The notes: generated from the sequence alone by a model not told the origin. A stretch of DNA of 64,000 nt from Lepidodermella squamata (GCA_047495785.1 JBLDXI010000074.1:1426001-1490000), one strand, 5' to 3'; positions 3,001 through 64,000 are shown, numbered from the stretch's first letter. Made by a program: numbers and translations.

Positions 3001-3148
3001 CGTTGCCTGCGATCCAGTCGGCCAGCAGCAGACGAGCTTCGATGGACAGTTGCTGCTGGGTGTAGACTGCGTATATTGTCTGCTGCACGATGTTGTTCTC
3101 CGACGGCTGCTGCATCAGCCAACATATTTCGCTCTGCTTCAAAGGCAT
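1..3148 (-). CDS. STAT: STAT transcription factor, STAT5-like, 3'-partial (>922 aa). Exons: complement(2702..3148, 1603..2592, 858..1529, <1..657)
   Basis: N-domain LSIEARLLLADWIA; DNA-binding domain SRGDRKHSQLVTEEKF and LSLPIVVTVHNSQ; linker LWDNYFAEPNRLPFEVP and FTFWDWF; SH2 GT|FLLRFSS split across intron 658..857; tail GGYEKLEQK (Tyr codon 385..387). Three phase-0 GT-AG introns (109, 73, 200 nt) keep the frame. Exon 4 is absent from the ORF track and is open to the window edge. Confidence 0.95.
2618..2652. repeat. (AAAGG)n simple repeat in STAT intron 1
   Basis: aaaggaaaggaaagaaaaggaaaggaaaggaaagg, read directly. Confidence 0.8.
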
Positions 3149-40699: not shown

Positions 40700-43600
40700 A
40701 TGACGCGCCGTGCCACCGCGCCGCGCCCCACGCCGTCCGCCTCGTCGCCCGACGACGACGCGCCGTCGTGGCTCGAGTACCAGGAGCTGGGCGCCGTCGA
40801 CGACACGGAGGTGCTGATGGCGGGCGTGGTCGACGACACGAAGCACACCGGCGGCGCTGGTGGTGGGTTCCTCGACGACGACAAGTGGCTCACCGTCAAC
40901 GGCTACGTGCGCCAGTTCACCATCGGCCCGAGCATTTCGGCCGGCTACTCGGCGACCCGCCTCACCACGCGCCGCGTCGTCACGGCCGCCAAGCCCGCGC
41001 TCACCAAGGTCACCAGACCTATGATGATGGCGCCGTCGTCGACTTCGACAACTTCGACCACGGCGATGCCGTTGCCTAGCAACCGCCAGACGCTGTTCGA
41101 GACGGCGACGAACCGCGACTCGCTGTTCTACTACCCGGAGATCGAGTTCGAGTCGTCCGCGTCCGGCGTTGATTTCTCGCTGTTCGGCTCCAGCGGCGGC
41201 TTCCTCACTACAACGTCCAACTCGACCCTGCCCATGGGCTTGCCTTTCGTCGACGAGCCGCTCATTGCGAGCTTGGACGACACGTGTCAACTGGGGCCGG
41301 GCGAGTGGCTGGTTGTCGCCGTTATGGTCCTGCTTACCGTATCGACGATTTGCATGAACGTCATTGTCATCATTCTCTTCCTTAGCAACAAGTTAGTTTT
41401 CATTTGCCACCTCATTCGGTCAAAGGTCAAAACTTTCGAATTTCATGGCGGTTCCGATGCCAAGTTGGAGCCCAAGCATAGCTCTATCGAATGTGAATAT
41501 TCGATACTTAGCCACCGATGGTACCTTTATTTGACCTGTGTTTCATGATTTGAGTCTTATAGCTTTCAATTCCCCCAATCGAACCTACTGAGAGATCTTC
41601 CAATTGGGCTTACCGAAAAAGTAAATAGTAAATGAATCGGTAATTGTTGGTATTCTAATTGATTTTTCGGATTTTCTCCATTCCCGGATCAGCAGTCTCA
41701 TGACCTTTATGACCTCATGACATTTCTCCATCAGGGCACTAGATTCAACTATATTAGCTATTTCTAATCTTTTATTTAGGCACATCCGGTCTCTGGGTAA
41801 CATGTACTACATGAGTCTCGCCTTCGCCGACCTGCTCATCGGCTCGATAGCCATGCCGCTGTCGACGTACATGCACACGCACTGCGATTTGTGGCCGTTC
41901 TCGTCCGTCGCCTGTGACCTGTTCATCTGCTTCGACGTCCTCTCGTCCACCGCGTCCATCATGCACCTGTGCGTGATCGCCATCGATCGGTACAAAGTCA
42001 TCGACGACCCGCTCGGCTACGTTCGCCGCCTGTCGCGAAAACGCGTCTCTGCCACTATAGGCGGCATTTGGCTCACGGCTAGCGCCATATCATTCCCAGG
42101 TACTTTTACCTACATGTAATATGTAATACACTGCCATATAGGTGTTTTCGATAATCTAAGGATTCGTTGTTAATTTAAGGAGGGTGGTGGGTTTCGGGTA
42201 GTTGGGAATGGTTAGGAAAGGAATGGACTGTGATAGAAAAATGGTAGTTCGGGAGGATGCGAGCAAAGGAAGGGCTAGTTGAAGGTTATTGGATAAGAAG
42301 AGAGAACAGGTTTTGAGCTGAGAAAGAGGGTACCGCTAATTGAGGAATGACGCCGGGTATTGAAGGGGCAGTGGAGAGGGAAAGGAAGGAGCAAGGAGGG
42401 GATGAAGGGGAATGACCATGGAAGGGAGGGGAAAGGAGGGGGAAATTGTTGATTGAAGGTTTCAAGACTTAGAAGTATTGGAATAAAATGAGGGAAGATC
42501 AAAAACCATAATATCACGTTCCAATTTGCCTATAGGTATCGCATGGTGGAAAGCTGCTGGAATGGCCGAGCATAGGACGGCTTTGATCGACATCGCCACT
42601 GGTGCGCCCTACCTCGAGTGCTACCTCGCCCACGAGCTGACTTACATATTCGTGTCGTCGGCCGTTTCTTTCTACATCCCACTGGTTGTCATGGCAACAG
42701 TCTACTACAAGATCTACCAAAAAGCAGTCGCACAATCTCGTTTCCTAATTGCCGGTTCGAAAAACGTGGCGGCTACTGAATTTCGGAGGCGAGCGGCATC
42801 TAGCGGGTCAAGTGATGCGGCTGCAGGTAAACTGGAGATTTCGAACATGTTCTCAGTTATTGTCGAAACCCCATATTTCATTATTAGCAAAACTCCGTAG
42901 GGTGATAAGCTTATCGAGCAGGAGGCCGGCTAAAGGTTACCATTGCCAAAAATTAACACTCTGAAATAATCCTTCATTCTCTTTCACAACCCAACTGAAA
43001 TACCCACAAATCACCATTTCCAACCCGCTGCAACGCCTCATCTATTCTCTTCTTTGGTATATTATTTCATCCTCTTCCTTTCTGTAGGACGATTAGCGCC
43101 TGGTCGCATCACCTTGCGCGCACACCGCGGAGGTCAAGCGAGCACGTGGAGGCTCAATTCGATACTAACCCGGGGTCTATCTGCCCCTCCAGTTCCGGCG
43201 CCCTCCGGTAAGTTGATACACAAAACTTCGTCCTCGACCTGCGGCAATGAGCCCTCCCGGTCGCCATCGATGCGGACCCGCGTTCAGCGAATCGTTTCGA
43301 CGGTTGGGACACCCGGGCGCCGCGGGTCCGTGTTTTCGTACCAGAAGCCGTTCGGCACCTTCCAGAAGCTGCGACTCTTGCTCAAGGAACACAAGGCAGC
43401 ACGCACGCTCGGCCTCATCATGGGCGTCTTCATCTTGTGCTGGCTGCCGTTTTTCGTGCTCAACATCCTGTCGGCGGTCATACCTAGCCGGTTGACAAAG
43501 GGTGACGCGTTCAAGGCACTCTTCAAAACGTTCACTTGGTTCGGCTACCTCAACTCAGGTATGTACTTAAATGATTAATCTATTGAATCTATTTAATTTT

Positions 43601-44471
43601 GTTCGTTCGTTCAGTGTTGAACCCCTTCCTTTACGGTGTGTCTAACCGAACTTTCCGGTCAATCTATATCAACTTCCTTACGTGCGGCCGTTACCGCAAG
43701 AAAACCGGTCGGAGGTCTGCAACGGCCAGTGTGAGTGGCCCTCGAAAGCACGCGAAACCTTTCCGAACTGCTTCTCTTGCCAAAATTGAACAAGACAACA
43801 TTGAAGCGACACTCCGAGACCCAAAACACCACCCCTCTTCCTACACCACCCTACAAGGCCAAGCTGCTAACTCAGGGGCAAGTCTGACGCTGGCTGGAGG
43901 CGTTGCTAACATAGCACCAGCTGTCAATGACATAATCTCCCGATCTCTGACCATCCAACTGCCGAAACGCGACATAGGCCACTTGTCTTGCTATTGCCAC
44001 TGCGCGGACTCGCCAAAGCAGAAACCCAAGGTCATCACGACAGTTGCTACAACTTCACCACCACTCGATTTGTCGTACCGCGGTCAAGGATCTCCGAAAC
44101 CATCGCCACGGCGAGAGAATCGCAGTTTGATTCGGCGGAAGGACTCGAATGGCGACGATGAGGTCTACGAACCTCCGGCTGTAGTTTTCTCGCTAGGAAG
44201 TTCCGCCCCACCGACCCCGCAGCGGAAACCAGTCGCCGAGCCATGCTGCAATTCTCGAGTCCACTCATCCTTAGCTATGGTTCCCTCGTCTGGTCAAAGC
44301 AGCCGTTTTTCGAGTGTTGGTTCCCGCCCTGGTACCAGAGGCTCCATTCCGATACCAGCACACGGTTTGGCGACCACCCTGACAGGGTCTTACGGTGATA
44401 CTGAGTTATCAGCTCAAGATTTGAGCACTAGGTCAGCAAAAACTAGCCAGCAAGATATTGCCACTCTGTAA
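40700..44471 (+). CDS. Class A biogenic-amine GPCR, invertebrate-type dopamine receptor (Dop1R2/INDR-like), ~876 aa. Exons 40700..41391, 41780..42099, 42536..42826, 43088..43558, 43615..44471
   Basis: TM2 SLAFADL; TM3 [21 protein letters not shown] (amine-binding Asp, DRY); TM4 AISFP|GIAWW; TM5 [10 protein letters not shown] (catechol serines); ICL3 TLRAHRGG; TM6 [21 protein letters not shown]; TM7 WFGYLNS|VLNPFLY. Phases consistent (2631 nt). Start codon uncertain; the subtype call rests on remembered motifs. Confidence 0.9.
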
Positions 44472-44715: not shown

Positions 44716-45044
44716 TCTCAGCTATTATTTGTAAATGAAAGCATTTAGCGTCAAGACTTTCCGCACTGTTGAAAACAAAACAGCAAGCTGCGACTTATCA
44801 AATTTTGATTACAAGGACCGAACGTGATTAGCAGAATGTCATCGATTACTATAGCGATTTGACCGGATATGCGCCAACCCTGAATAAGGCTATCCTTCAA
44901 ATGGACTCAGGTGATTACGGCAAACTGTTATGTGCTATTCTCGAGGGAAATGAGGAAAGTGATATTATTGTTGTTTCCAGCACCACAAGAAACCTGATGT
45001 TGAAGAAACTGAAATCCCACCTGAATAAAACAAGAAGTTTTTGA
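44716..45044 (+). pseudogene. Decayed annexin repeat-IV terminal exon
   Basis: After acceptor tgtag (44715), phase 1 reads VSAIICK*KHLASRLSALL...QILITRTERD*QNVIDYY...TLNKAILQMDSGDYGKLLCAILEGN. This is collinear with the last exon of gene A (VTAIRTPTMYFAQRLNAAM...RIIVSRCEFDL...FGDYETALTSLINGN) and has the same splice position. Stops at 44736..44738 and 44829..44831. Confidence 0.75.
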
Positions 45045-45290
45045 CATTGTGACACTGTGTGATCGATATAAATCGACCGGGCTGCATATGCGTAAAAGCA
45101 ATCGATTGATTGCTATTAGCGGTCTTCACGCCTATTGGTTTTTTTTGTTGACGCTGCTTAGCAGTAGGCTCATCGGCTATTCACATACGCTAGGTGCAAA
45201 TCGTTTTTCAGAGCTGTTTCTGTATCCTGGGATGAAACACTGCAGACATTGGGATGAATTGTCATACGTAACTTCTTAATTTCACCCAGC

Positions 45291-48200
45291 ATGCAGTATA
45301 TTACGCCGACGGACCTGTTCGCGACGAAGGTCGCTTATTTCTATCGGGAGGGCGATCAACGTTTCCAGCCGATTCGCATTGTCATGAAGAAGAAAGACTT
45401 CCTCAGCCTAGAATCGCTTGTCAAAGACCTTAATGAACGAATTTCACTTCGAAATGGCGTGCGGTCGATTTTCGAAGCGCCAGAAGGCCGGCATCGTATC
45501 ACTAGCCTCGATGAAATTCTCAACGAAGGCCATTACATTTGCTCGCAGAGTGAATCGAAAGCTCTACCGGTCAATATCGCTGCAATAAAGCCAGAAAAGT
45601 GGCAGGTCTACAATAACCAGGAGCCGAAGCCTACCCGTCGATTGAAAAATGACGATGGAATACGGCGCCATTCATCAGCCTCGAACAGCATGGATGTCGA
45701 TAGACAAATTCGACAGATTGAAGAGGAACTTTATGGCCCGAAGACAACAAGAGGTCATAGCAAATCACGAAATCGAGGATTGAAACGATTGTCCGCGAGA
45801 GAAAGGCAGCGTAATGAAATCGTGAGCCTCAAATTGGCCGATATCACAAAGGGACCTACGCGCAACGTATCCCTACCAACGATTACGAGGCATAAGAGGC
45901 CGTCCTTACTCATGCAAGGTGTCGACGTTGTTCCAGAGCCCAACAATAACCGAGTATCTTGGCCTCGAGAAGTTCCCTACCTCGCGTTAAACCACTCTTT
46001 AGAAAACTTACCTAGCCGAAATTTGAAATTTCAAAGTTACGCCGCTCAAGTAACGGATCCTCAACGCCAGGGCTTTCGACACTGGACGGTAAGAGTTGCG
46101 ACCGGCAACATGCCAGCTGGTTTCAGCACATCGACAGTTTTCATGTCAATCATCGGCCGAAGTGGCTCGACGCCGAAATTGGCCTTAGCCTCCGAGCAGG
46201 GGGTTTTCTACTCTGGCGCGACCGATATTTTCAAAGTGAGAGCACCTAATGTTGGGACTATCATGAAAATCCGGCTCGAAATTTCCTGTTCGGGTCAACA
46301 GCCGGATTGGTATTGCGAGAATGTTATTTTAGAGGACGATTATTCCATGGAGCGGTTTCCTTTTGTTTGCAAAAACTGGTTCAGTCGAACGATGGGCGAT
46401 CGATCGACATGGCGTGACATCCCAGCATTCGGCGACGAAACTTCAGCCAGAGGTCCGGCGGCTAACCACATCTTTTACGAAGTTACTGTCCATACCGGTG
46501 ATGTGTGGAATGCTGCGACCTCTGGCAAGGTCTATATCACGATATTGGGTGAAAAAGGCTCGTCAAAGACTTTGGAGTTGAATAACCCGAAGAACCATGA
46601 AAATGAGCCTTTTCGTAAGAGCCAAATCGACATTTTCCGAATTGAAAGCCCACCTCTAGGTGAGATCAAGCAATTGCGAGTTTCACACGTTCATGGCCAG
46701 GTAGACTGAAATTTTCTCGGCCTTAGTTTAGTAAACGTCTCTTGTCATTCTCAGGCAAGCGGCGCGCAGACTGGATGGTACCTGGATAGCATAGCTGTTC
46801 GTGAGAATGATCTTCACACCCAGTTCCACTTCCCTGCTTGGCGGTGGCTCAGTGAATTTGCTGATGATAGGCGAACTGCTGTTGAATTGAGGGCGGTTGA
46901 TAACTACAACTACACGTGCCTTCAAGATAGAACCATGGTAAAAATAGCTCAAGAGTTCATCTTTTTAAGCCAAAAAATTTCCTTGTTATCAGTGGCCGTT
47001 CGAACGATGGAAATTTCGGCACATAGGAGCCGAATTGATTTTCTATTCGGAGGTCTCAAAAAAGGCTTTACGCATTACATCTGGTGGCTACATTGACGCA
47101 AGGGGCGAGACTCCTGAACGATTAGGTTAGTTGATGCTCTATTTTATAGAGAAGTAACAGGCATTCAATACGTTTTCTTGCGATCAGATCACACGAGTAA
47201 GTTTCAATAATCTGTCTGTTATACTCTCCTCTTCTATCCTTAACTATCCTTTTAGCTGATTAGCCTATATATAGTAGCAAAGCCTATATTTTCGTTATTA
47301 ATGCAGGTATCTTCCAAGTTTATGACATTGAGGAGAACGAGAGCGAAGCTATCATATCGGTGGTTAATAAGAGCGATTCTCCGTCTTTCTTGGCCTTCAA
47401 CGAAAAGAAACAGATAATATCGAGGCCCAGTTTCGCAAAATTCTGCAAGCTTAGGTTGCATACGTTTTCTAATCGAACTATAGCTCTGGAATCATACAAC
47501 ACTCCCAAGTGAGACTCGCTTTATAGTAGCTCGACTGAGTTTACTTGTTACTTTTTCAATATCAAATCAGCAATTACATGTCCGTGGCTACAAATGGACA
47601 AATTTACTCTGAGAACCAAATGAAGTCACACCCTTCTTCGAATCAGCAATTTCACTGTTATGTAAAAGGCTGCTTTCGAGACAAGGGTGTTATCATGCTT
47701 TGGTAAGTTATCAACAAAAATCCGCTTGAATTTCCTAACATAAAAGTGTAGTACGTCTCGGATACAAGCCCTGTGCATAGATCGCGATCCTTCGCAGCTA
47801 ACTGCTCTTGGTGCTAGAAATAGGTAACCTTCGACGCGGCTAAGTTTCATCTTTCTTTAACTGTCATTTTGGCAGAGTATCCCATTTTCGAGTCCACAAA
47901 GTCCGCCCTAAAGTTCGCCTGTTTGAATCAATCATTTTCCCGGGCCACTTTCTTCGAGCGACGAAAAAATCTTGCGACTGCTTGGGAAAGGGCGATCGAA
48001 TGTGTGAATTCAAGCTGACACGGTTTCGAGATGAGAATTTCGTAGTCCTAGAGGCTCTTGGTGCAAAAGGCAATCTTGGGTTCACTGACAAAGGCGGTGT
48101 TACTCTTCACAATGCAGCGAAATCTGCCGCAACGCAAGCCTTATGCCGCTTGTATCCCGAAGCCATCGAGTGTGAGTTTGCTATAAAATTCAAGTATGTA

Positions 48201-51200
48201 AGTTGTTATTAAAATTCGATTACATAGTTGGAAAGCCGAAAGGAAGTGATGAGCTGGCTTCAGAACATTCATTTATAGAAGAGCCGCATGTGACGATGGG
48301 CCCAGTCGTGTATCTTCCACAAACGCTTCCCCAGCGTCTCCCTCCGCCCCCATCAGGAAATTCTCAACTGACCAGCCCAGACTCAACCAGCCATATATAT
48401 CACCCGCCCGGTTCAAGAAATGTGACGGTAGCGAAACCCGGGAAACTTCACGGCCGTAGCTTCATCAGCGATGCGACGACGTCCGAGGTGTCTACTAAGC
48501 GCTCCACAAAGCCGTCAAGGCGCGGCGTCAGCGACAAGTACGATTCGGATGACGAGTCAATAGAGAGCGAGGGCCATTTTTCAAAATCGACCACCAAGCA
48601 GAGCACGATACAGACGAAGAAATCGACTGTCAGCAAATCTGTCGTGCGGCGCAGTGAAGCGTGGAATGAGATGGCAGACTCCGAGGATGACGGCGATGTG
48701 GAGGAGGATGAGTTGCTCAAGTCGCAGGCAACTTCAAAGAAGACGGAAAAACCGACCCCTGCGCCATCTACCGTGTCTACACAGCCGGCAAAGTCTTCCG
48801 TGGTTTCTCAGCCGACCCCTGTTCGAGCTGTGGCGCCACCTCGACCAGCTGCAGCTCCGATCCCGGCAGGAGCAGCTCCCAGACCCGTTGCACCCGGAAC
48901 CCAGGTGGGTCCCAGACCGGTTGCGCCAGTAGCTGTTCAGCCAAGACCAGCAGCCCCGGCACCCGCACCCGCACCCGCACCCACACCCGCCCCAGCTCCA
49001 GCCCCAGCTCCGGCGCCTCAGCCAAGACCGCCTGCTCCATCTGTGCAGCCGGCCCATGCACCCCAGCCAGGTATAATTTGTCACCACTTTCGGTTTTGAT
49101 ACTTGGGGCAATTGAATAATTTGGTGAGCTAATATTTCCGATTCATATCTCAAGCAACGGCTCAAAAACCCAGCGAGCCCAAGCCAGTTGTTCCCGTGGT
49201 GCAACCACCTAAACCCAAGGGTATTTATTCGAAATACTCTAGAAGGAATTTTCTTATATCGTGAACTCTTTCCTCATTAATTAATTAATTCGAACCTATC
49301 AATTTCTGCCTTCTCATTCTCTTGTACGGTTAAATTCCTTACCCAAACACATTATCATTTATTCTTCTGTCTTCTGGCGCCAATACAATTTCAACTTCCA
49401 AGCGTTTTCGCAATCTTAACATAGCTCACCAACCTTCGTACGGTTGGCTTGATTCAGTTATATGATCAAACGAGATGTCGCTTTTAGAGCCAGAACCTAC
49501 CCCGAGGCCTGCTGCGCCAGAACAGACTAAGCCAGCAGCACCAGTGAAAGCACCGCCTTCTCAACGAGAAAATCCGCCTAAATCGCCTCCTCCAGCAGCT
49601 TTACCACCCAGTAACATAAAATCAATCGGTAATTTGATCCAGACCACCTATCCTTTGATACTATCGTCTTATTTCACTCCTCTCTATTTCGATTATGCAA
49701 ACAATAAGTCTCTGATTCAACTTTATTGCTGTGAATTGTTTTTACTTACAGCTCAAGCCCCAGCGCCTAAACCAGGTTGTTGCTTCTTTCTATGCTGTGG
49801 TGGCGAACTGCCCATTTACTATTAAGATGTTAAGCGTTTTAGCGAATTTTATTTACTTCGAATTAACCATCCGCTGATGGATTGCTGCCTTGTGACTTGA
49901 AAATAACCTAGTATTACCTAAAACCTCCGTTACCTCGAAATTAAATGTGGTGAACCTACTTAATTGCGCTCATAGCTCCGGAATCAATCGCAATTGATGT
50001 CGAGCGTGAACTCTGGCCTGCTACAGCTAAAGCCATTGAGCGAAGACCGGAAACCCCGAAAATTAAGCCATTGCCTCCTCGAGAAAAGACTGCCGAGAAA
50101 ACAAAAGAGCGCGCAATACAGGCAGGGGCAAAACCAGTTGAAGAGGCGAAGAAGCCAGAGGTGAACCCACGAATCTCAGCCGAGAAAACGAACGATGAGC
50201 CTTTTAAGTCCGTAAACACTTCGTATCTGAAACCATCAAATCACATCGAGAAGACTAGAGAGCCACAACCTATTCTTGCTAGAGATAAGACGAGAACACT
50301 TGAGCCAAAGCAAGAGCAGAAATCAAATCCTTCGTCAGATGAATCTTTTCAAGTGCAAAAAGCAACCGGTATTTTCTAAAGAGCGTGCGCTGAATCCTTC
50401 GCGTGCAATTCGATAATCTGCAACTGCTTAAAAATCATTTTGCTGTCTTCGATATCTCTGATATATCAGATTCTTTTGAATCAAAAAACACTTTGCTTAC
50501 AATTCAATTTGATGGCTATCTTTTAATTTTTCAATCCCCAATTTTCGGATCTTATCAATGAGTCTGAGGAATTTTATTTGTCTTCTTCCTGTTGAACTAG
50601 TAACCAGTGTCCAGCTCTTAATCGTTCTTACTTGCTCACTTTCAGCCCCAGCTCCGCCAGCGCAGCCAGTTCAAGCACCGAAACCAGGTAAATCTCAGAT
50701 CAAGAAAACAAACGTCGTGTTTTTGCCCACGGAGTGCCAGTTTGTTGATATTGTCTGTCATTGTCTTTTTACCTTTGTCTTGTTTGAGTTGATTATTCAT
50801 ATATTTCTTATAAAATGTTGCAAACTTTCGATTATTTGTGTTACTTTTCCCTCAGCTCCTGCGCCAGTTCCGGCTCCAGTTCCGGCCCCTTCTACGCAGG
50901 CCCCTAAACCGGCTCCAACACCTCAGCCTGCCCCAACACCTGCTCCAGCTGCGAAACCTATGCCGGCCCCAGCGCCCCAGCCTGCCCCTCAACCGAAACC
51001 GCAACCTGCTCCGGTCGCAGCAACTCCGGCACCGGCACCAGCACCGGCCCCAAAACCACTACCGCCTGCCCAGCCGACGCCACCGATCGCGGCACCACCG
51101 CAAGCTCAACCTGCAAAGCCCGCTGAGCAAAAGCAGGCGGAGAAGCCAAAGGAACCCGAAAAGCCGAAAGAACCGGAGAAACCGAAGGAACCTGAAAAAC

Positions 51201-52681
51201 CAAAGGAACCAGAAAAACCGAAAGAACCAGAAAAACCGAAAGAACCAGAAAAACCGAAGGAACCTGCGAAACCGAAGGAGCCTGAGAAGCCAAAGGAACC
51301 CGAAAAACCTAAAGAGCCTGAAAAACCTGAGAAGCCGAAAGATCATCCGCCACCACCGGCGAAGGAACCTACGAAACCTCCTGCCGAAGCGAAGCCAAAA
51401 GATGCAGAACCACCGAAACCACTTGAGCAAAAACCAGTTGAGAAGCCAAAAGAACCCGAGAAACCGAAGGACCCACCGCCTCCTCCTGCAAAGGAACCGA
51501 CCAAGGCCCCGGAACCGAAAAAGGAAGAGCAGCCTAAACAAGATCTCAAACCAGCACCAGCGCCTGCTCAGAAGCCTCCCGAGCCCCCTAAGGAGCAGGA
51601 AAAACCCACAAACGCAACAGTTATCCCCGCCAAAGTCTTCAATCCAAAGTCTGACGCCGAGCTGCTCAATAAAGCAATGAAGGGCGGCGGTACAGATGAA
51701 GAAGCGTTGATCACAGTGCTAACAAAGCGCAGTTACCCCCAAAGGGTCGAGATTGCGAAGAATTACAAAGATATCTACAAAAAGGAACTGGTCGCCGAGC
51801 TAGAAGAGGAGACAGATGGTAACTTTTTCAACGTTCTGTCTAGCTTGCTGCGGAGTCCAGCTGAGTTAGGTGCTTACAACTTGAAAAACTCTCTGGAGAA
51901 TGACGGGGACGACGAGGATGGTCTTGTTGAGTTTATTTGCACGTCAAACCATGAAAATCTCCAGCAAATAAAGGCTAAATACCAAGAAAGTGAGTTTAAG
52001 CATAATTTTGTAACATTCCTGAATTACCGTACTGTAAATATAGTGTTCAGCATCGCTCTGGAGAAAGACCTTGCCAAAACCGGTGGCAACGCAGTAATTC
52101 GCAAACTTATGATCGCAATGCTTGCCCGACCAAAGGCGCCCGAAAAAGTAGACGAAGCAGCGGCGCGGGCTGATGCTGCTAAATTGGATGTCGAATTGAA
52201 AACAAAAGATGGCGAGAAAAGTGTGGCAGCTTTCAGTGACCTGCTGTCAACTCGCTCTAGGTCACAGCTGCGAGCCATCTTCAACTACTACGAAGAGGCA
52301 CAGAAGAAGTCCTTGGAGCAGGCGTTGACCGAAGAGTACAAGGGCGACGCTCTGAAAGCTTTTCTAGCAGTCGGTATGCCGCTTTATTGGAATTATTTAG
52401 TCACGTTTAATTATGGAATCTTTTTTGATCTAGTGACCGCAATTCGAACGCCGACCATGTACTTCGCTCAGCGCTTGAACGCAGCTATGAATGGGTTCGG
52501 GCCGAAAAACCCTGCCCTCATCCGAATAATTGTCTCTCGTTGCGAGTTCGACCTCGGTCTAGTCAAGGCTGACTATGAGAAAATCTACAAGAAGGCCCTG
52601 CAGAAGGACATCGAGGAGGAAACGTTCGGCGACTACGAAACTGCTTTGACATCGCTCATCAACGGCAATCTGAAACAATAA
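45291..52681 (+). CDS. Gene A: RP1-like DCX-PLAT-PLAT-beta-trefoil protein fused via a Pro/Lys/Glu spacer to one annexin core (~1885 aa). Exons 45291..46700, 46755..46937, 46993..47125, 47188..47196, 47307..47508, 47571..47702, 47752..47823, 47876..48171, 48228..49070, 49155..49220, 49488..49628, 49752..49775, 49976..50368, 50646..50687, 50856..51989, 52044..52373, 52434..52681
   Basis: DCX: AYFYREGDQRF...SLVKDLNERISLRNGVRSIF..PEGRHRITSLDEI..GHYICS. PLAT x2: WTVRVATG...DWYCENV...FPFVCKNWF and YEVTVHTGDVWNAAT...GWYLDSIAV...FPAWRWL. Trefoil motif FESIIFPGHFL. Annexin: DAELLNKAMKGGGTDE...RIIVSRCEFDL...GDYETAL. All junctions are GT-AG and in frame (5658 nt). Individual spacer exons are less certain than the domains. 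Confidence 0.82.
47188..47196 (+). other. 9-nt microexon of gene A (ATCACACGA)
   Basis: ttttcttgcgatcag|ATCACACGA|gtaagt. Inclusion makes the alignment to gene B gap-free (ARGETPERL-DHTS-IF versus ARAEPVDKK-EGFA-VF). Confidence 0.75.
51140..51340 (+). repeat. Coding 18-nt tandem repeat, (EKPKEP)x10 plus partial units
   Basis: Peptide units nearly identical while third codon positions vary between units. Confidence 0.95.
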
Positions 52682-53049: not shown

Positions 53050-56000
53050 ATGAAAATGCGAGGACGAGGTGGAAATTACGACGCTTCAGTTATGGATGAT
53101 GACGATGAGGAAGAAGATCAGGACGACGACTATCTGTACAAATACATGCAGAAGCCGCAGCAGAACCAGCAGTTGCGAAAACTGCCTTTTGCGGCTGTAC
53201 AAGCCTCAGAGCAATACGGCGGGAAAGTTGCCCACTTCCATGCTGAGGGAAACACGGGCAACACGCCTGCGCAGAAGGTTATCATTTCGAAACTCCGATA
53301 TCCCACCCTGGATTTGCTGATGGACGATCTGAATCGACGAATTCATTTGTCGCGTGGTGTTCGAGCGATTTACACGCCAAAAGGTCGGCATGCTATCGAA
53401 GATTTGGCTGATATCGAACACGGTGGGCACTACATTGTTTCGTCGTCGGTGTTTCGCGGCGTTGAGACGGATGTTGCGAAGGGAGCATCAGGTCCTAAGC
53501 CGTGGCTGGTCAATCGGCATCACATGGACAGGTACAAGCCAGAGGATGCGACGTATTACAACGCACTAAATAACGGCCAACTTCGCAAGAGATCGCGTAA
53601 TGACTCGGCATCAGAACGCAGGCGCAGTGTAAGATTTTCGCGGCTCCATTATTAATCATTTGACAGCAAAACTCCTATTTCATTCCATAATTTCTTGCAC
53701 GGAATGAGGAAAGCGGGAGAAATTATAAGCTGATGTTATTTTTGCCATCAGACCTCTACTTTTTCATTTAAAGATTCAAATCGTTCAGCTTAATTTGTTC
53801 CCTTCTATTTTTTCAGAGATCCAATGAGCGTGAATTGACTCGGTTGCCTGATATCTCACCGCGAACTAACGGCCCTGTTCGCGGCAAGAAAGAGAACAAA
53901 CTGAGCCGGATAACCCCTTCTCGCCGATATTTCTCAGACGATGACACTGACCGCCGGCCTTACGGCCTACGTCAGTCCTACCCAGATTCGGCTCGAAAGA
54001 AAACTATTCTCCCGAAAATTGGAGGGGCTCCGAAGAAAGCGTGGGAAGAGCCGAAATCACCGCCGCCAGCTCGCGGGTTGAAACGGCTTGAACACGAGCC
54101 TTGGAACGAACCGCCAGCTCGAAAGAACCCCAGGAAAAAAGGGGTGAACCCTGAGGCTTCAGCGTATTGGCCAACTGGGGTCGGCTATCGTGGTGACGAT
54201 TATGTGATGCCTCCAGCTGTTTTCCAACAGCAGCAAAAACAAGAAGCTCTGTCGCAGAACAACGGTCAAAATAATGCTGCTGCTTCACGGCGAGGCAAAA
54301 TGTTGGACTACGGCCGAAATGCCATGTCTCGCCATTTAGTCTACACCATCCGTCTGATGAGTGGTGAAATGCCAAGTGGTGCATCTACCTCTAACGTTAT
54401 GATAACGCTGTACGGCGCCCATGGCTCTTCGCCTACCTTCACATTTGAACCCAAGAGAAAGGCTTTCTTATCCGGGACGACCGAAGTATACGCCGGAGTG
54501 CGTCTGCCCCAGGATATTGGAGACATTTACAAGCTGAGGATAGAAATAACAAATACAGGCTTGAATCCAGATTGGCTGTGTGATGAAATCCAAGTGGAAG
54601 ACGAATCAACGCGCGAAATCCTCAGCTTTCCCTGCAGAAGGTGAGATTAGGGATTAAAATGTCAATATACATATATGAACAATCGCGTTTTTCAAGATGG
54701 CTCTCTTCAACACTCGGTGATCGGCACATTGTTCGAGAAATTCCTGCACTTGGTCAAGACAGGCCACCAGTTGCTCGTAAGTTACCTCATGCTTCCATTG
54801 AGCTATTCCTTCAGACAAGGACCTGTTTCCTCGTTTAGTCGTTCACTACGAATTAACCGTCCAAACCGGTAATCTTTACAACGCTGGCACGGCTGGTAAA
54901 GTTACTATTACATTGTTTGGTGAGCGAGGCGATTCGGGGGCTCGGCTGTTAAAAATTCCAATCTCCAATAACCGATCACCCTTTTCAAAGGGCGCTAGCG
55001 AGGTTTTCATGATAGAGAGCGTATCTCTCGGGGAACTGCGGCGTCTTAGAGTACAGCATGAACCTGAATCTCAGCAAGCTGGCTGGTATTTAGATCACAT
55101 AATTGTCCGAGAAAAGGTAACTTGATAGAATGCTATAGAATATAGCAAACAATGTCATAATAGGATTTGCATGCAACCTTTGTATTTCCCGCCCAACGGT
55201 GGCTGAATACCCGCGATGAGGATCGGCAGCTAGCGGTCGACCTCAAAGCCAGTGATTTTCCGAATTACGCTCGTTTTCTTGACAAAAAGCTAGTAAGTTG
55301 ATTTTTCACGGCATCTTCGAAGGTTCATCACGATGTTTAGTGGCCAACCGAGCGATGGAAGTTCAAATTGGTTGGTGCCGAGCTGGTGCTCTACTCGATG
55401 ATGTCAAATAAGGCTCTCCGCGTCACTGGAGGAGGCTTCATTGACGCAAGAGCTGAGCCTGTTGACAAGAAAGAAGGCTTTGCTGTATTTTTGTCGCAAG
55501 AGCCCAGTGAACACGATAACGAGTCGATTGTAGCACTGAGGACAGCATCGAAACTACCAAGTTTTGTGGCCTTCAGTGGCAGTCAGAAGATTGTCTCAAA
55601 GAACACGTATTCCGGATCTTGCGACCTTCGGATTCACGCGTTATCCTCAGGAGCTATAACAGTCGAATCAGATAAGTATCCGGGAAATTTCATCTCGGTA
55701 GCATCGAATGGCCAGATGTATCCTGAAGCGCAAGCGTTGGCCCAACCAGGACCTAATCAGTCGTTTTTTGCCTACGTGAAAGGAGCTTTTCGAGACACCG
55801 GTATCGTCATGCTGTGCACATCCAAGAATCAAACGATGTGTATCGATCGAGATCCGAGTTCGGTTTCCGGCATTGGAGGCCGAAACAAGTTGGCTCATTT
55901 TCGCGTTCACAAGGTCGCGATTGGCAATATTCGAATGTTTGAATCTGTTGTCTTCCCTGGCAGCTATTTGCAAATAAAAAAGGGAGCATGCAATTGCTTA

Positions 56001-59000
56001 GGAAATGGCGACAAATTCTGTAAGCTCAAAGATAATAAATAGTAAAAGCTGAATGTATTTATTTATTTATTTGATTTAAGGTGAATTCCGAGTCAGAAGA
56101 TTCCGAGAGCAGAACTTCGTGACGCTCGAGAGCATTCGTGATAGGGGCTTTTTGACCTTTGCCCCAAATGGCCAGATTCAAGTTCTCGAGCATCAACCAG
56201 CAACAGGGGCTCCATCTTCCAGGCTATACCCTGAAGTCGTATCATGTGCGTTTGTCCGAGCTCGAAAGTGTTTATCGATTGATCTATTCTTTTACTTCAA
56301 ACAGTTGGTCGGAGAAAAGAAGGCAGCAAGCCACCATCTGAAATCACTGAAATTAAGAAGAAAATCGACGATCCTGATTCCGACCTCAATTCCGAGGTTG
56401 ATGACCTGTATCGGGATCGATATCGCGGGAAACCGAAACCAGCGCGAAAATCCAACGATCCTCCGCCTGTGCGGAAAGTAAAGAAAGAAGAGCGGGCCCC
56501 ATCGCCTGGTCGGAGGGCTCCACCGAAAGGGCTGAGGCCGACCTTGACACCGGCTGCCCCATTCCACGCCAAGGACGATGCTCAGCTCATTCGCAAGATC
56601 ATCTCTCGCAACGAGTTCGATCCAATCCTGAAAATTGTCTGCCGTCGAACAGCCGACCAGCGAACTGCCGTTGCCAAGACCTATAAAGACCTATTCAAGA
56701 AGGAAGTTGTTCAAGATATCGAGACTGTTTCCCAGGGTGAGCTCAGCGAGTTAGTGTCGGATCTTTTCCTGCCATATATTACCTTCGTGGCGGAGGATGT
56801 GCACAAGGCCCTTCAAGGTAACGTGGACGAAATAGCTATGATCGAAATGCTGTGCTCGAATACAGATGAGGAGCTCACTCAAATCAAGCAAGAGTATCAA
56901 AAACGTGAGCTCTTTAAAATCACAATTAGTCTTGAAATAAGTAAACTTCCAATTCTGTTTAAGGATTCGGTCAAGCCCTGGATTCAAGTATCATGCGATC
57001 GATGACAAGCGGCTTTGCTCAACGACTTTTCGTTAGATTGCTGTCAAGACCATCATCCCATGACTCAGTCGTGAAAGCAGCCATGGAAAATGACGCAAAG
57101 ATGTTGAATCAAGAATTCGGAGAACGCGTCGATCGTCCCGAGGACCATTTTCTGTTCACGTTGCTGGCTGGTCGCAGCCACACCGAGCTGCGAACAATAT
57201 GCGATAGCTACGTCCAACTTTACAAGACGGAGGTCGATCAAGAATGTTTGAAGAAAATCCCTGGCGAGAACGGGAAGTACTACGCCACTGCCATCTCTTG
57301 CATAACCAAGACTCAGAGCTATTTTGCACAGCGGTTGAACGAAATTCTTACAACCGGCCCCATAGATGCGCTAGATCGCGTCATCTTATCTCGCTGTGAA
57401 GTTGATACGGAGAATATCAAAGCAGAATACGAGAGGCTGTTCAACGCGTCACTGACAAAGAAAATGGCGGCGAAGATCAAAGGCAGTCATCTGACAGCAA
57501 TGTTGACTTTGCTGAAAGAACCGGTGCCAGATTCGGGCGAACAGTCGCCACCCTCGACAAGGCGAGATCCCAAAAACCCAGTTAAACCCAAATCAAATGA
57601 TCAGAGCAGCGAATTGGCCCCAACTGTTTTTCCAGAGAAGAATTTCATCGCAAAACAGGATTGTGAAGTCATACAAAAAGCTTTGAAGTCGAAAAATCCA
57701 GAAGAAATAGCTGCTATTCTGACCTCGATTCTAACTCGAAGGTCTTGGCAGCAACGGCAGGATATCGGCAGAGTTTACAAAGATGCGAACAAGCATGACT
57801 TGGAAGGAGATATCGAAGCTGCGGTCGAGGGATTTTTCTGTAAGTTGATGGTGCGGCTCCTGAAGACGCCGGCTGAAGCTATGGCTCGCGACCTTAACGC
57901 TGCGATCAAAGCGAGTGATGAAAGCTGCATCATGGAAATAATCTGCACTGCCTCGCACAATGACCTCCAAGCAATCAAAGACAAGTATCAAAAGCGTAAG
58001 TCCCATATTATTTATTCCTAACGCTTCTTTTTATATGATTTATGATTTGTACACTAATATTTCAATTTTCAATTTTCATAAAGTTTTCAGCAAGCCATTA
58101 CACAAAGACATTGAGGAAGAGAGTGGAGCTTTCCGAAAGTTCATGGTCGGTCTTCTTGGCCGCTCCAAGGCACCCAGTGACTCCACTATTAACCAAGACA
58201 TGTTCGATGCTGATGCTAAAATGCTGCATGACGAGATCAAGAACAACGGCACTGACAACCTTATTAAATTTTTCACTTCGAACCGCGGGCCAAGCCAACT
58301 CAGCTCAATCTACTTGACCTACAAACAGGAGTTCAAAGCTGAGGTCGAAGAGGATTTGAAGAAGCACATGAACAGCGACGTCGGAAATGCATTTCGAACG
58401 TGCGTTGAGTCTAGCAAGAACAAAACTGTCTACTTTGCGAAACGACTGAGAGCTTACTTGGATGGCAAGGGCAACCAGAACGCCGGCGTTGGTCGCCTCG
58501 TTGCCTCTAGGTGCGAGGTTGATCTCGCAAATATCAAAGCCGAGTACCACAAATTGACCGGCAAAAGCTTGACCCTGAGCGTCGCCAGCCTCGTCACGCC
58601 GAAGGACTACAGTCAAGCTGTTGTTTCTTTGATTGAGGGTAACAAATCAGGGAGTGGACAACTGGCTGGGCCCGCGCCGCCTCCTTATACGCCTACTGTA
58701 TTTGCTGAGCCGAAATTCAACGTAAAGCAGGACTGTGACGCGCTTCAGAAAGCTGTGAAAGGCGCAGTAACGGAACCTTTCATCACCATTCTTACTAGAC
58801 GGTCTTGGCAACAACGTGCTGAAATTGAAAAGACCTACAAGGATGCTAATAAGCGTGAGTTGGAAAAGGATCTGGAGGGCGAGACAAGCGGGAACTTCTT
58901 GAAGGTTTTGTTGAAACTTCTGAAAAAACCTTACGAAAGTTCGGCTCGGGATTTGAATGTGGCCATTAAGACGAACGACACAGATTGCTTGATCGAGATC

Positions 59001-62000
59001 ATTTGCGCAAGCTCCCACTCCGACCTTCAGTCGATAAAAGAGACCTATAAAGAGCGTAAGCTGAGTTCAAAACTTTCAGCCACCATAACTTATTTCTTTA
59101 CAGTATTCGGCTCAAGTCTTCAAGAAGATGTCGAATCTCTGAGCGACTCGAAGCTTGAAGAGCTGTTAATCGCTTTGATCAATCGCCCAAAATCACCTGA
59201 AACCGTCGATGCATCAAACGCGAAAAACGAAGCTCGGGATATGCATGATGAGATAACAGCCGGTGGGAAAAAGGGCGTTAAGCATGTCAACGAACTGATC
59301 TCCACAAGAGGCCAAGCCCAGCTGAGAGCAGCATTTGATGCCTATCAGAAGGAGTACAGTGTCGACATTGCCGATGACTTCAGGAAGTATTTCGATGGCG
59401 ATATTGAGGGAGCCTACGTTACAGTTGGTAAGTTTTATTCGGCCATGTGTATTATTAATAGAACACTGAAATCCTGCGTTTAAGTCGATGCGATCCGGAG
59501 CAAACCCAGATACTACGCGAAACGATTAAACAGTGCACTTACGGCTAACAGTGGCACTCACCACGGGTCTCTAATTCGGCAAATCGTAGCCCGCTGCGAG
59601 ATTGATTTGGCCAATGTCAAGTATGAATATGAACAGCTATACGGTAAATCTCTTCTGAAGGATGTTGAGTCAAAAACGTCGGGCGATTACCGGAGTGCCC
59701 TGGTTTCTTTAATAAATGGCAACAAAGCTGTCGAAGCTCCTCCTCCCCCGCCTTCTAAGCCCAAACCAGCAGAACCAAAGCGCCCTGAACCGAAGCCTTC
59801 AACTAAGGAGCCCGTTGTCAAAGAGGCGAAAGAATCCAACGTGAAAGCTCCTCCACAGTCGAAAATGAAATTCATCCCCACAGTAGTCGCTGAGCCGAAG
59901 TTCGATGTCAAAAAAGATTGCGAAGTCCTTATGAAGGCAATGAAAGGAATCGGGACCGATGAAGATGCTCTAACATCAATTCTCACCAAGCGATCATCGA
60001 AGCAGCGTCAGGATATTAAGAAGAATTACAAAGAAATTTACGATAGGGTTAGTTTATTTATATATCAACTTAGTATCGAACGATTATTAATGATGCCATG
60101 AAATTGTAAAGGAACTGAAACAGGTAAAATCAGCTCTATCTCTGCCTGTGATTTTCTGAGAGATCTAACATTTCATCTATTTAAGCAGGCTATCGCTTGC
60201 AATATTCTGTATTTATTTTTGAAATATTATGATCTTGTTCTCGCAGGACTTGGCTAAGGAAATCGATTCGGAAAACAACGGCAACTACCTGAAAGTCCTC
60301 ATGGCCCTCTTGTCGACCCCAGCGGGCTACTTGGCTGAATGCCTCAATGCTGCAATGAAAGGAGCTGGAACAGACGAGGACACTCTCATCGACATAATCT
60401 GCACTTCTTCAAACGCAGACCTTCAACTAGTCAAGGAAGCCTATTTGTCCAGTAAGTTTCCTATGACTCTCAGTTTAATGATTATTGAATGGCTGAAATA
60501 TTCTTGGCAGAATTCAAGGCCAAGCTGGAGGATGACATCGTGAGCGATACATCTGGGTCTTTCCAAAATCTGTTGGTTTCCCTGCTAAACCGGCCGAAAT
60601 CGCCGGAGAAAGTTGATCCGAAAACAGCTAAAGGCGATGCCAAAATGCTGCATGATGAAATAATGAAAGGCGGAAGCAAGGCTGAAGTGCAACTCAACAC
60701 CCTGTTCGCAACACGAGGTAAGGCATCAAATTGCATACGTGCTTCCTGATACTCACCCTTTTCATAGGCCAAGCTCAGCTAAGAATGGCGTTTGACTTCT
60801 ACAAAGAAGATTTCAAGTCAGATATCGAGGATGATATCAAGAAACACTTTGATGGCGACATTGAAGCTGCCTACGTCGCTGTCGGTGTGTTTGGTAGCTT
60901 GTTTAGTATATTTATATTAATTGTCCTGACTATCAATTAGTTGGTGCCATCCGTAACAAGCCGCTGTACTTGGCGAGGCAAGTGGACAAATCCATGTCAG
61001 GCGCAGGGACGAGAGACGATGACTTGATCCGCCTGGTCGTTTCCACGTGTGAAATCAACCTCGGCAACATCAAGACCGAGTATGAAAAGCTGAAAAAGCA
61101 ACCCTTGGTTAAGTCTGTTGAAAGCGAAACGAATGGAGACTACCAGAAGGCCTTGGTTTCGTTAATAAATGGAAATTTTGATGCGAAAGCTCCAGCAAAA
61201 GAAGAAAAGCCGAAAGAGGAACCAAAGACGCAAAAGAAAGCCGCTGAACCTGGTAAAACTTTTTCAATCACGATCGTTTCATTTTGTAATGACTCAAATT
61301 TGGGAAATGAATAGCTAAAACAGGAAAAGGTGCTACTACTGCTAAGGCAGGGAAAACAAACGAAAAAGCGGCGGTTTCAAAAAAAGGTGACCCCGAAACC
61401 CGGTGTTAATTTGTGTGTTTTAGAGTAGACGAAAATTAGCTGAAAATTAGCTGCCCATTGTTTTTGGCATGATGAGTTTTTATTATATCTTGAAAGACAA
61501 TTAATCTCGCCTAACCCAATCGCTTCTTTGCTTTCTATTAGAAACCGAGGCGAAAAACATTGCCTCTATTCCAACGGTGGTTGCCGAGCCGAAATTTGAT
61601 GCGAAAAAAGACGCCGAAGTACTGATGAAGGCGATGAAAGGCATCGGCACAGACGAGAAGAGCATCATCGCCGTGCTAACCCGTCGAAACTACGCTCAAC
61701 GGGCCGAAATTGAAAAAGCCTACAAAGCTGAATACAAAAAGGTGAGATGATCAATTTTCGGAATGTGAGATGCTGTTCAAATTCGATTTATTAAGGATCT
61801 TGTTTACGTAAGTTAATGGGTTTTGTAAATCGCCGTCGTATCTGTATCGTATCGTAGCATTATGATGTTTTTTTCATATCTATCATCTATCTGTCGTCTA
61901 TGAAGTCTATTCTATCAATCTGTCTAAATGACCATAATTTTCGAATTTTGATAAATTTCTTCCAGGAATTGAGGTCTGAGTTGGAGAGCGAAAATAGTGG

Positions 62001-64000
62001 TAAGTTCCAGGACACCTTGGATGCGCTCATGACGGCGCCTCTCGAGTTCGCGGCTCAGAGTCTGAAAAAAGCAATTGAGGGAGCTGGAACAGATGAAGAG
62101 GCAATCATTGAGGTGCTATGCTATGCTAATTACGACGACCTTCAACTAATCAAAGCCAAGTACGAAAAGCGTAAGTTGGAGTGGCCGTCGCACATTCATT
62201 TGCATTATTTTTGTTCCTAGTTTACAAGGTTTCACTGCAGAAGGATATCGAGTCGGATACAAGTGGCCATTTTCGAAAACTTCTAGTTGCTCTACTCAAT
62301 CGGCCTAAATCTCCAGAGAATGTTGACGTGAAAGGGGCGAAAACTGATTCGAAAACCCTACATGATGCATTTGCGAAGGGCAGTGATAAAGCTGCCGACG
62401 AGTTGATCAAACTGCTGTCAGGCCGAGGGCGCTCGCAGCTACGGCTCATATTCGACACTTACAAAGCTGATTACAACACTGATGTTGTGGATGACATAAA
62501 GAAAAACTTCGATAGCGACATCGAATCAGCGTTCGTCGCAACTGTCTATTCGATCCGCAACCGTTTCAAGTATTTCGCGAGCCGGTTGAATGCAGCGATG
62601 GCAGGGCTTGGGACTCGAGACCAAGCTCTCATTCGGCTTATTGTCTCGCGCTGCGAAATCGATCTCGGAAATGTGAAGGAAGAGTACGAGAAAATGTACA
62701 AAAAGTCTCTTGTAGCAGCCGTCTCAAGTGAAACTACGGGCGATTACTGCGACTGCTTGGTTTCGCTCATTAACGGTAACGGAAGCGGGAGCCCGCTGCC
62801 AAAAGCTCCTGAACCGAAACCAGTTGAGAAGAAGGCAGAAAAGAAAGAGCCAGAGAAGAAGGAACCAGAGAAGAAAGAACCAGAGAAGCCCGAAAAAGGT
62901 ATTAAAATATAAATGATGCGTATCCATATATAGTCGTATAATGAATCGCTGGGTAATTTTTGAACAGGAAAGAAAGGTAATATCAGCTTTTGCTTTCATC
63001 CAAATTTTTTAAATAGCCGGTTTATTTTATCAAGTAGAGTAGTCTGTAGCCCAATTAAATTCAAATAGCAATGCTCACGCAATTACGATACTATATATTA
63101 TATATTTCTTCAGCAATTGAGGCCTCCTGCGTCGCATCTGTACCGACTGTGGTTGCTGAGCCGAAGTTCGATGCGAAAAAAGATGCTGAGGTGTTGATGA
63201 AGGCCATGAAAGGCATTGGCACGGACGAGAAAAGCATCATCTCGGTTCTCACTCGCCGAACCTATCCGCAAAGAGCTGAGATCGAGAAGAAGTTCAAGGC
63301 GGAATACAAAAAGGTAACTTTAACATTTTTCACTCGCCATGATTACGATATTTAATGGCCTGGCAACATTTTACGAACTTAGAATTTCCTTGAAGTGAGT
63401 CTTGGTGTTGTGTATTTTGACCCCGATTCCTGATTCCCATTGCTCGTGTCATTGCTGTGAGAATCTATTTTAAAATGACGATTCGTTTCAGGAACTTCTT
63501 GCAGATCTAAAGAGTGAAACTGGAGGCGATTTCTTCAATCTTCTCACAGCCCTACTTACTCCACCTATCGAGTTCGCAGCGAAAAGTTTAAAGAAAGCGA
63601 TTCAAGGCGCTGGAACCGATGAGGAAACTCTAATCGAGGTGATCTGCTACGCATCATACGACGATCTTCAACTCATCAAGAGTAAATACGAGATGCGTGA
63701 GTTGAAGTTCTACTATATATTACCCCTTCATAATTCCCCCACTATTCGCAGTTTATCGAGTTCCGTTGCAACAAGATGCCGAAAGTGATACTAGTGGTCA
63801 TTTCCGGAAGTTGCTCGTAGCCTTGCTGAATCGGCCTAAATCGCCTGAGAATATTGATGTCAAAGCCGCGAGATCTGATGCGAAAAGCCTTCATGCCAGT
63901 ATAGCTAAAGGTGGCTCAGCAGCTGCCGATGACCTGACAACGGCTCTGTCGATAAAAGGCCGATCTCAGCTGAGGTTGATCTTCGAGAATTACAAGGCTG
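53050..64000 (+). CDS. Gene B: RP1-like DCX-PLAT-PLAT-beta-trefoil protein fused to at least 6 tandem annexin cores, 3'-partial. Exons 53050..53628, 53817..54640, 54697..54776, 54839..55116, 55164..55292, 55341..56019, 56081..56245, 56305..56904, 56964..57995, 58084..59055, 59104..59427, 59485..60047, 60247..60451, 60511..60717, 60768..60884, 60941..61252, 61315..61386, 61542..61741, 61966..62170, 62221..62898, 63114..63313, 63492..63696, 63752..>64000
   Basis: DCX: YPTLDLLMDDLNRRIHLSRGVRAIYTPKGRHAIEDLADIEHGGHYIVS. PLAT x2: YTIRLMSG...DWLCDEI...FPCRRWL and YELTVQTGNLYNAGT...GWYLDHIIV...FPAQRWL. Trefoil motifs VESDKYPGNFI, FESVVFPGSYL, LESIRDRGFL. Annexin cores start near 56540, 57620, 58690, 59875, 61570 and 63140, each opening with a PTL/PTV..F..K.D motif. 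Introns are mostly 47-90 nt GT-AG and preserve frame. Confidence 0.88.
60112..60123 (+). other. Candidate 12-nt microexon (ELKQ), annexin core 4
   Basis: ttgtaaag|GAACTGAAACAG|gtaaaa inside the 199-nt phase-0 intron 60048..60246. Confidence 0.6.
61796..61807 (+). other. Candidate 12-nt microexon (DLVY), annexin core 5
   Basis: tttattaag|GATCTTGTTTAC|gtaagt inside the homologous intron 61742..61965. Confidence 0.65.
62968..62976 (+). other. Candidate 9-nt microexon (adds GKK) in the linker between cores 5 and 6
   Basis: tttttgaacag|GAAAGAAAG|gtaata inside phase-1 intron 62899..63113. Confidence 0.5.
63383..63394 (+). other. Candidate 12-nt microexon (NFLE), annexin core 6
   Basis: ttttacgaacttag|AATTTCCTTGAA|gtgagt inside the homologous intron 63314..63491. 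Confidence 0.65.

Follow-up and report, generated by a model that had tools for sequence, protein, structure and literature searches.

A gene with a DCX-PLAT-PLAT head and a tail of at least six annexin cores in Lepidodermella squamata, a candidate microtubule-membrane tether

Overall structure of gene B

The window, a stretch of 64,000 nucleotides (nt) from Lepidodermella squamata (GCA_047495785.1 JBLDXI010000074.1:1426001-1490000), contained a large gene on the + strand, here termed gene B, in which a chain of annexin cores followed a head of DCX, PLAT and beta-rich regions. A spliced path free of stop codons led from the ATG at 53050 through the DCX domain, two PLAT domains and the beta-rich region into core 1. 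Within the window, gene B comprised at least about 2,940 amino acids (aa) and was still open at position 64000. The best explanation, with a probability of roughly 60%, was one large gene for a microtubule-anchored, multivalent, Ca2+-dependent membrane tether. An earlier reading of the same DNA, the original prediction, had described a giant poly-annexin of at least six cores and more than 22 repeats in one frame. The array was recovered with 23 repeats, five cores being full and the sixth partial. A free-standing poly-annexin was not found, as the chain formed the C-terminal tail behind the DCX domain, the two PLAT domains and the beta-rich, weakly FGF-like region.

Annexin array

Pfam Annexin (PF00191) was matched by every open reading frame (ORF) piece on the + strand between 56283 and 63999 (29-159 bits; cutoff 25). 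For the gaps between coding pieces on this strand, all frame-preserving GT..AG pairs were listed and the pair restoring the annexin consensus was chosen. The resulting tail (56305-64000, +) held 15 exons and 14 GT..AG introns. It comprised 2,030 stop-free codons, the first seven of them intronic with the true exon start at 56305, or about 2,020 aa. A repeat hidden Markov model (HMM) trained on the window's own annexin repeats placed 23 repeats in the tail, which made up five full cores of four repeats each and 2.6 repeats of core 6. The six cores were alignable end to end, from repeat 1 with repeat 1 to repeat 4 with repeat 4, at pairwise protein identities of 28-75%. A six-frame scan of the window detected annexin repeats on the + strand only, in gene B (56565-63999), in an upstream paralogue termed gene A (51644-52669, four repeats) and in a weak fragment (44835-44951). 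The tail of gene B was composed of the following features.

56305-56564, +: basic, proline-rich linker from the head to core 1 (translation), without ATG
56565-57520, +: core 1, four repeats, the most diverged core, without GxGT Ca2+ loop; intron 56905-56963
57650-58643, +: core 2, without canonical Ca2+ site; intron 57996-58083
58722-59723, +: core 3, without canonical Ca2+ site; introns 59056-59103 and 59428-59484
59907-61176, +: core 4, GxGT and acidic cap in repeats 1, 2 and 4; introns 60048-60246, 60452-60510, 60718-60767 and 60885-60940
61253-61541, +: modelled core 4-5 linker intron, 289 nt, phase 1, in-frame GTAAAA..TTAG join
61598-62780, +: core 5, three canonical Ca2+ sites; introns 61742-61965 and 62171-62220
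62899-63113, +: modelled core 5-6 linker intron, 215 nt, phase 1, with an in-frame ATG inside at 63071
63170-64000, +: core 6, truncated within repeat 3 by the window end, repeats 1 and 2 whole; introns 63314-63491 and 63697-63751

The boundaries between cores 1 and 2, 2 and 3, and 3 and 4 lay within single exons (56964-57995, 58084-59055 and 59485-60047, respectively) and contained no stop. The peptides quoted for these boundaries in the original prediction were present, each in one exon. Boundaries 4-5 and 5-6 held one modelled intron each, both in frame and of the same phase. ATG was absent ahead of core 1 and core 5 within their own exons, and the earliest methionine of the tail frame fell in repeat 2 of core 1. 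The three in-exon boundaries, the absence of ATG ahead of cores 1 and 5 and a layout kept in a distant relative upheld the claim that the cores are not separate tandem genes. The linkers, which were rich in proline, lysine and glutamate, measured 26-61 residues including the N-terminal lead of the next core. Most introns of the window spanned 48-88 nt. The repeat-1 introns of cores 4-6 (60048-60246, 61742-61965 and 63314-63491) were 178-224 nt long, and direct joins across them gave a 21-residue spacing, equal to that of cores 2 and 3, which are intron-free at this place. A hidden 12-nt microexon would thus not be needed in these introns.

Isoforms with different core numbers appear plausible from the exon arrangement, given linker introns of one phase and a core 5 unit (61542-62898) that comprises 1,083 nt or exactly 361 codons, is frame-neutral and is flanked by phase 1 introns on both sides. 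Taken further, the gene might mainly yield several products, with core skipping or with transcripts ending or starting between cores, and thus a ladder of core-number isoforms. The linker introns of 289 and 215 nt, compared with 48-88 nt elsewhere bar the three long repeat-1 introns of cores 4-6, would suit such a ladder. So would the ATG at 63071 in the second linker intron and the stop at 61312-61314 that is read if the first is retained. Two NCBI isoforms of a Nematostella poly-annexin, 1,969 and 2,302 aa in length, also differ in repeat count. However, no skipping joint or transcript end was seen in the contigs of sequencing run X1, which were too thin to reveal one, and cores 4-6 of the relative were also intact and in frame. 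A ladder of this kind was considered unlikely, and it is compatible with the single large gene rather than opposed to it.

The original prediction had proposed extending the sequence past position 64000. Contig 12 of a second run, X2, extended 3.5 kb beyond the window end and matched repeat 4 of core 5 at about 0.2 kb and repeat 1 at about 1.9 kb. The nearer match would complete core 6. The chain therefore probably has seven cores or more, and eight would agree with the spacing. When the core 5 exon was used as a homology query to find the gene past 64000, no protein of this genome was among the matches, the best of which was 41% identical, and exact look-ups of two window ORFs with the same aim gave no match.

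Assembly and transcription

DNA contigs of run X2 were collinear over the locus with an even depth of about 90. X2 is possibly the sample behind the assembly and is therefore not independent support. Between cores 5 and 6, DNA identity of 68-77% was confined to the exons, and the introns were unalignable. Together with the core identities of 28-75%, this excludes a collapsed or duplicated assembly, in agreement with the original prediction, in which an artefact had been regarded as unlikely. A tandem repeat with a unit of 1.1-1.6 kb, as well as breaks of the X2 Logan unitigs at 59363, about 60250 and about 63000-63150, could point to a misassembly or to an array of decaying pseudogenes. This was effectively refuted, not only by the diverged cores and introns but also by the approximately 2,020 stop-free codons, spliced RNA contigs, even DNA depth and core-by-core orthology with a second species at about 40% identity.

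The contigs of run X1 were RNA-derived, because they were spliced. They covered exons in 59.2-64 kb at low depth, with coverage following the exons, and confirmed the introns 60885-60940 and 63697-63751 to the base. Their depth was zero in bins of the long introns 60048-60246 and 61253-61541 (zero over 61201-61600). Gene B was transcribed and spliced in this part. The presence of all cores in a single mRNA would follow mainly from sequence logic.

Head of gene B

The head comprised the following features.

53050-53628, +: exon 1 with the start ATG; DCX domain at about 53281-53448 (Pfam 57.6 bits, cutoff 22)
53817-55116, +: two PLAT/LH2 domains at about 54342-54640 and about 54847-55110 (Pfam 46.4 and 43.6 bits, cutoff 23)
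53817-54640, 54697-54776 and 54815-55116, +: exons of the PLAT region, separated by modelled introns
55164-56245, +: all-beta region, possibly one or two beta-trefoils; exons 55164-55292, 55341-56019 and 56081-56245
56246-56304, +: modelled head-to-tail intron, 59 nt, GTGCGT..CAG, phase 1

The DCX domain was single, unlike the tandem pair of doublecortin or RP1. For the beta-rich region, the sole Pfam match at E values up to 1 was FGF with 19.5 bits, below the cutoff of 24, and Pfam gave no match on the relative's orthologue of this region. An AlphaFold model from a six-row alignment was all-beta with low confidence (pLDDT 42, pTM 0.25). The nearest neighbours of the region in the ESM Atlas were clusters with DCX, PLAT and FGF, by feature similarity (score 0.75) and not by alignment. 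The region was about 58% identical to an ORF of the relative. Among the in-frame options listed, the head-to-tail intron was the one with the best acceptor.

Gene A (45258-52678, +) carried a like head. DCX-PLAT-PLAT lay in one ORF of 483 aa, followed by a beta-rich region, about 1 kb of Pro/Ala/Glu/Lys-rich repeats of the 'PEKPKE' type and one annexin core (51644-52669) with the stop at 52678. This core, which belonged to the same clade as those of gene B, showed a canonical Ca2+ loop in repeat 1 only. Both genes thus share the DCX-PLAT-PLAT-beta-rich head and a C-terminal annexin part, whereas gene A has a single core that is reached via the long Pro/Glu/Lys/Ala-rich spacer. An intron in gene A may be read at the place equivalent to the head-to-tail intron, after its own '..YPEAIE'.

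The annexin chain is therefore the tail and not the whole protein, given that no ATG precedes core 1, that head exons lie upstream and that gene A is laid out in a like manner. The chain could instead be transcribed alone, as a stand-alone poly-annexin with the DCX-PLAT gene as a separate neighbour. No RNA evidence joined head and tail, the proposed donor between them was weak, and neither DCX nor PLAT was found on any of about 240 public annexins retrieved. Against this, the first tail exon offers no ATG until repeat 2 of core 1, and head exons take up the DNA ahead of it. In gene A, the like head leads into an annexin core, with an intron read at the equivalent place. In the relative, the beta-rich region stands directly ahead of core 1, with one ORF reading into the linker. 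Separate transcription of the chain was accordingly regarded as improbable.

Conservation in a metagenomic relative

Among 1.84 billion representatives, the nearest protein was a metagenome ORF of 654 aa with 41% identity. The relative to which it belongs was represented by the ENA contigs L001, L002 and L003 and the proteins P0001 and P0151-P0153. A gene with like DCX and PLAT head domains (P0205 on contig L004) was present in the same metagenome sample as L001. On one strand, L001-L003 held the end of the beta-rich region (L003 carrying the ORF compared above), a basic linker and no fewer than six annexin cores, and the contigs ended in core 6. One ORF continued from the beta-rich region into the linker. 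Another, of 666 aa, spanned repeat 4 of core 1 to repeat 3 of core 3, and the next ran from repeat 4 of core 3 into core 4. In a tblastn search, residues 209-1171 of the tail aligned collinearly with L001 (39% identity).

Gene B and the relative agreed in the order of beta-rich region, basic linker and cores and in the introns within the core 4-5 and 5-6 linkers. They differed in sequence (about 39-45% identity) and in GC content, which was 38% in the relative and about 45% in the window. In maximum-likelihood trees, cores 1 (support 100/100), 2 (100/99) and 3 (93-97/79-82) paired one to one across both species. Later cores were not separated by the trees into one-to-one pairs with cores 4-6 of the window, and cores 5 and 6 of the window appeared as recent sisters. 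The presence of the same layout in a second species, with orthologous cores 1-3, indicates that the fused layout is old and has been kept by selection. L001 (1667-3664) had no introns at the repeat-2 positions occupied in the window by 57996-58083 (core 2) and 59056-59103 (core 3), so introns were gained or lost inside the array since the split.

Calcium sites and proposed function

A GxGT loop with an acidic residue 39 positions downstream of the threonine was taken as a canonical type II Ca2+ site. Eight such sites were seen in gene B, three each in cores 4 and 5 (repeats 1, 2 and 4) and two in the partial core 6 (repeats 1 and 2). None was present in any repeat of cores 1-3. The relative (L001) had no site in cores 1 and 2 and one in core 3; its cores 4 and 5 carried three GxGT loops per core, with one loop lacking the acidic cap. 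The polarity of Ca2+ sites along the chain is the same in both. The original prediction had proposed a covalently pre-assembled annexin chain. The cores are indeed linked in one gene, but with canonical sites confined to cores 4-6, the chain lacks the uniformity of a pre-assembled lattice.

DCX domains are microtubule binders, PLAT domains direct proteins to membranes or partners, and the type II sites of annexins mediate Ca2+-dependent phospholipid binding. On the best explanation, the chain grew by internal tandem duplication in this lineage. Cores 1-3 are old, occur in the distant relative too and have lost their canonical Ca2+ loops, the cores from 4 onward retain three type II sites apiece, and cores 5 and 6 are the most recent copies. 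In the proposed mechanism, the DCX head would anchor the protein on microtubules, with possible lipid or partner contacts from the PLAT domains. Cores 1-3, which are Ca2+-blind, would serve as a spacer arm, and the distal Ca2+-competent cores would jointly bind acidic phospholipid as Ca2+ rises. A microtubule structure, in the cortex or a cilium, would thereby be tethered to the overlying membrane with high avidity and in a switchable manner. Given the head, we infer a cytoskeleton-to-membrane tether, which is more specific than the scaffolding, bridging or repair that had been predicted.

A single chain might also act through its tail as a Ca2+-triggered scaffold for membrane repair or bridging, at lesions or between two bilayers, with the head for localisation only. 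The biology of annexins A6 and A5 (PMC10882027) points in this direction, as do the canonical Ca2+ sites on cores 4-6, numbering at least eight, and the flexible linkers, which would let cores face different membranes. However, this leaves unexplained why Ca2+ sites were lost from the conserved, head-proximal cores 1-3 of both species and why poly-annexins were recurrently fused to microtubule- or cilium-type heads. Such a scaffold was rated improbable.

Several points weigh against the microtubule-membrane tether encoded by one gene. No fold was assignable to the beta-rich region from Pfam or AlphaFold. The head-to-tail donor, GTGCGT, is non-consensus. RNA depth in X1 was very low, with zero over 58.0-59.2 kb, and no read or contig was seen to bridge the head-tail junction or either linker intron, the RNA being thin. 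The gene end and the final core count lie beyond the window. Function was deduced entirely from domain logic, cilia or cortical microtubules being connected with it by analogy, and we know of no experiment on any protein of the gene B family.

Independent cnidarian and mollusc poly-annexins carry a head of the Hmw/CFAP97 family, which is cilium-related. Tentatively, and with low confidence, annexin chains whose head is of microtubule or cilium type, DCX-PLAT in gene B and CFAP97 in the cnidarian and mollusc proteins, could represent an unrecognised convergent class of Ca2+-switchable microtubule-membrane linkers. In gene B, the chain might then be functionally polarised, the conserved Ca2+-blind arm setting the distance and the variable number of distal Ca2+-competent cores the avidity.

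Neighbouring sequence

Other genes in the window were assigned by eye and were of animal type. They comprised a STAT-like gene with an SH2 region (804-3148, -), an Ig/FN3 adhesion protein (27198-32020, +) and an amine-receptor-like G-protein-coupled receptor (41721-44468, +). Together with the GT..AG introns, mostly 48-88 nt in length, these genes mark the DNA as eukaryotic. A lone segment between the receptor-like gene and gene A, 44835-44951 (+), weakly matched the end of an annexin repeat ('..SGDYGKLLCAILEGN..', E 0.017). It could represent a relic exon or another gene's last exon. No Rfam family was matched over the whole window.

Comparison with other poly-annexins

The original prediction had suggested a search for proteins with more than eight annexin repeats, and such proteins were found, with up to 31 repeats in Paramuricea clavata. 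The first search of representatives gave a maximum of 19 repeats, in a Nematostella vectensis protein of 1,969 aa, and a second search was seeded with this protein. Repeats were counted with the window-derived HMM unless stated otherwise. The chains found included the following.

Paramuricea clavata 'annexin A6-like': 2,937 aa, 31 repeats by the repeat model and 28 by Pfam
Actinia tenebrosa LOC116300181: 2,533 aa, 24 repeats
Oculina patagonica: 2,323 aa, 23 repeats
Nematostella vectensis LOC5516017: XP_048586536, 1,969 aa, 19 repeats; isoform X2, 2,302 aa, 22 repeats
P0221, an ENA metagenome protein on an 11 kb contig: 2,341 aa, 22 repeats

Many of the chains from the second search carried an Hmw/CFAP97 domain at the N-terminus. 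P0221 had a fascin/FRG1-type beta-trefoil inserted at residues 1497-1569 and belonged to a distant lineage, with 23-28% identity to the tail of gene B. Poly-annexins with an Hmw/CFAP97 head and 8-24 repeats were found in sea anemones, corals, abalone and Aplysia (P0002, P0206-P0214, P0010, P0220), some of them automatically named 'titin homolog'. A literature search found no paper on these proteins, nor, among the papers covered, one linking annexin with DCX/PLAT or with CFAP97, and we know of no experimental work on cnidarian poly-annexins. The abstract of the 2017 work by Fernandez et al. on atypical annexins (Biol Chem 398:751) reportedly mentions up to 20 annexin domains.

The designation of gene B as the largest known annexin was rejected in view of public predictions of 2,302-2,937 aa with 22-31 repeats. 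These predictions also render outdated the two cores of annexin A6 as an upper limit, which the original prediction had implied. A 2024 review (PMC10882027) still gives the annexin plan as four repeats, with annexin A6 at eight. Chains of 20-30 annexin repeats, which are not known to have been studied, are nevertheless present in genomes. Gene B is a further member of this little-studied, already recorded kind, and neither a record nor a new kind of protein. It adds an independently evolved chain, a DCX-PLAT-PLAT head and a conserved split into Ca2+-blind and Ca2+-competent cores. It provides a testable model for multivalency and spacing in cytoskeleton-membrane coupling; its value is comparative and hypothesis-generating and no paradigm shift is implied.

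The cores of the window and the relative grouped together in one clade (98-100% support) that excluded the cores of cnidarians, molluscs, priapulids, A6-like proteins and choanoflagellates. Such annexin chains have therefore arisen several times. The cnidarian poly-annexins, whose entries are automatic gene predictions, resemble gene B in having five to eight four-repeat cores, short linkers, an N-terminal non-annexin head and growth by internal duplication. They differ in their independent origin, in an identity of only about 25% and in the Hmw/CFAP97 head in place of DCX-PLAT-PLAT-beta-rich. With its DCX/PLAT head and its cores in a separate clade, gene B does not belong to the CFAP97-annexin lineage.

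For the head, like domains occurred in ESM Atlas clusters automatically named 'oxygen-regulated protein 1' (1,385 and 1,995 aa), which combine DCX, PLAT and FGF-like domains, the likeness being one of feature similarity only (0.75). Vertebrate annexin A6 shares with gene B the tandem cores on a flexible linker and the type II Ca2+ sites. However, annexin A6 consists of two cores without a foreign head, whereas half of the visible cores of gene B have no Ca2+ sites. Gene B is not an annexin A6 orthologue, as it holds at least six cores and the two cores of a carp A6-like protein grouped with B12-like annexins.

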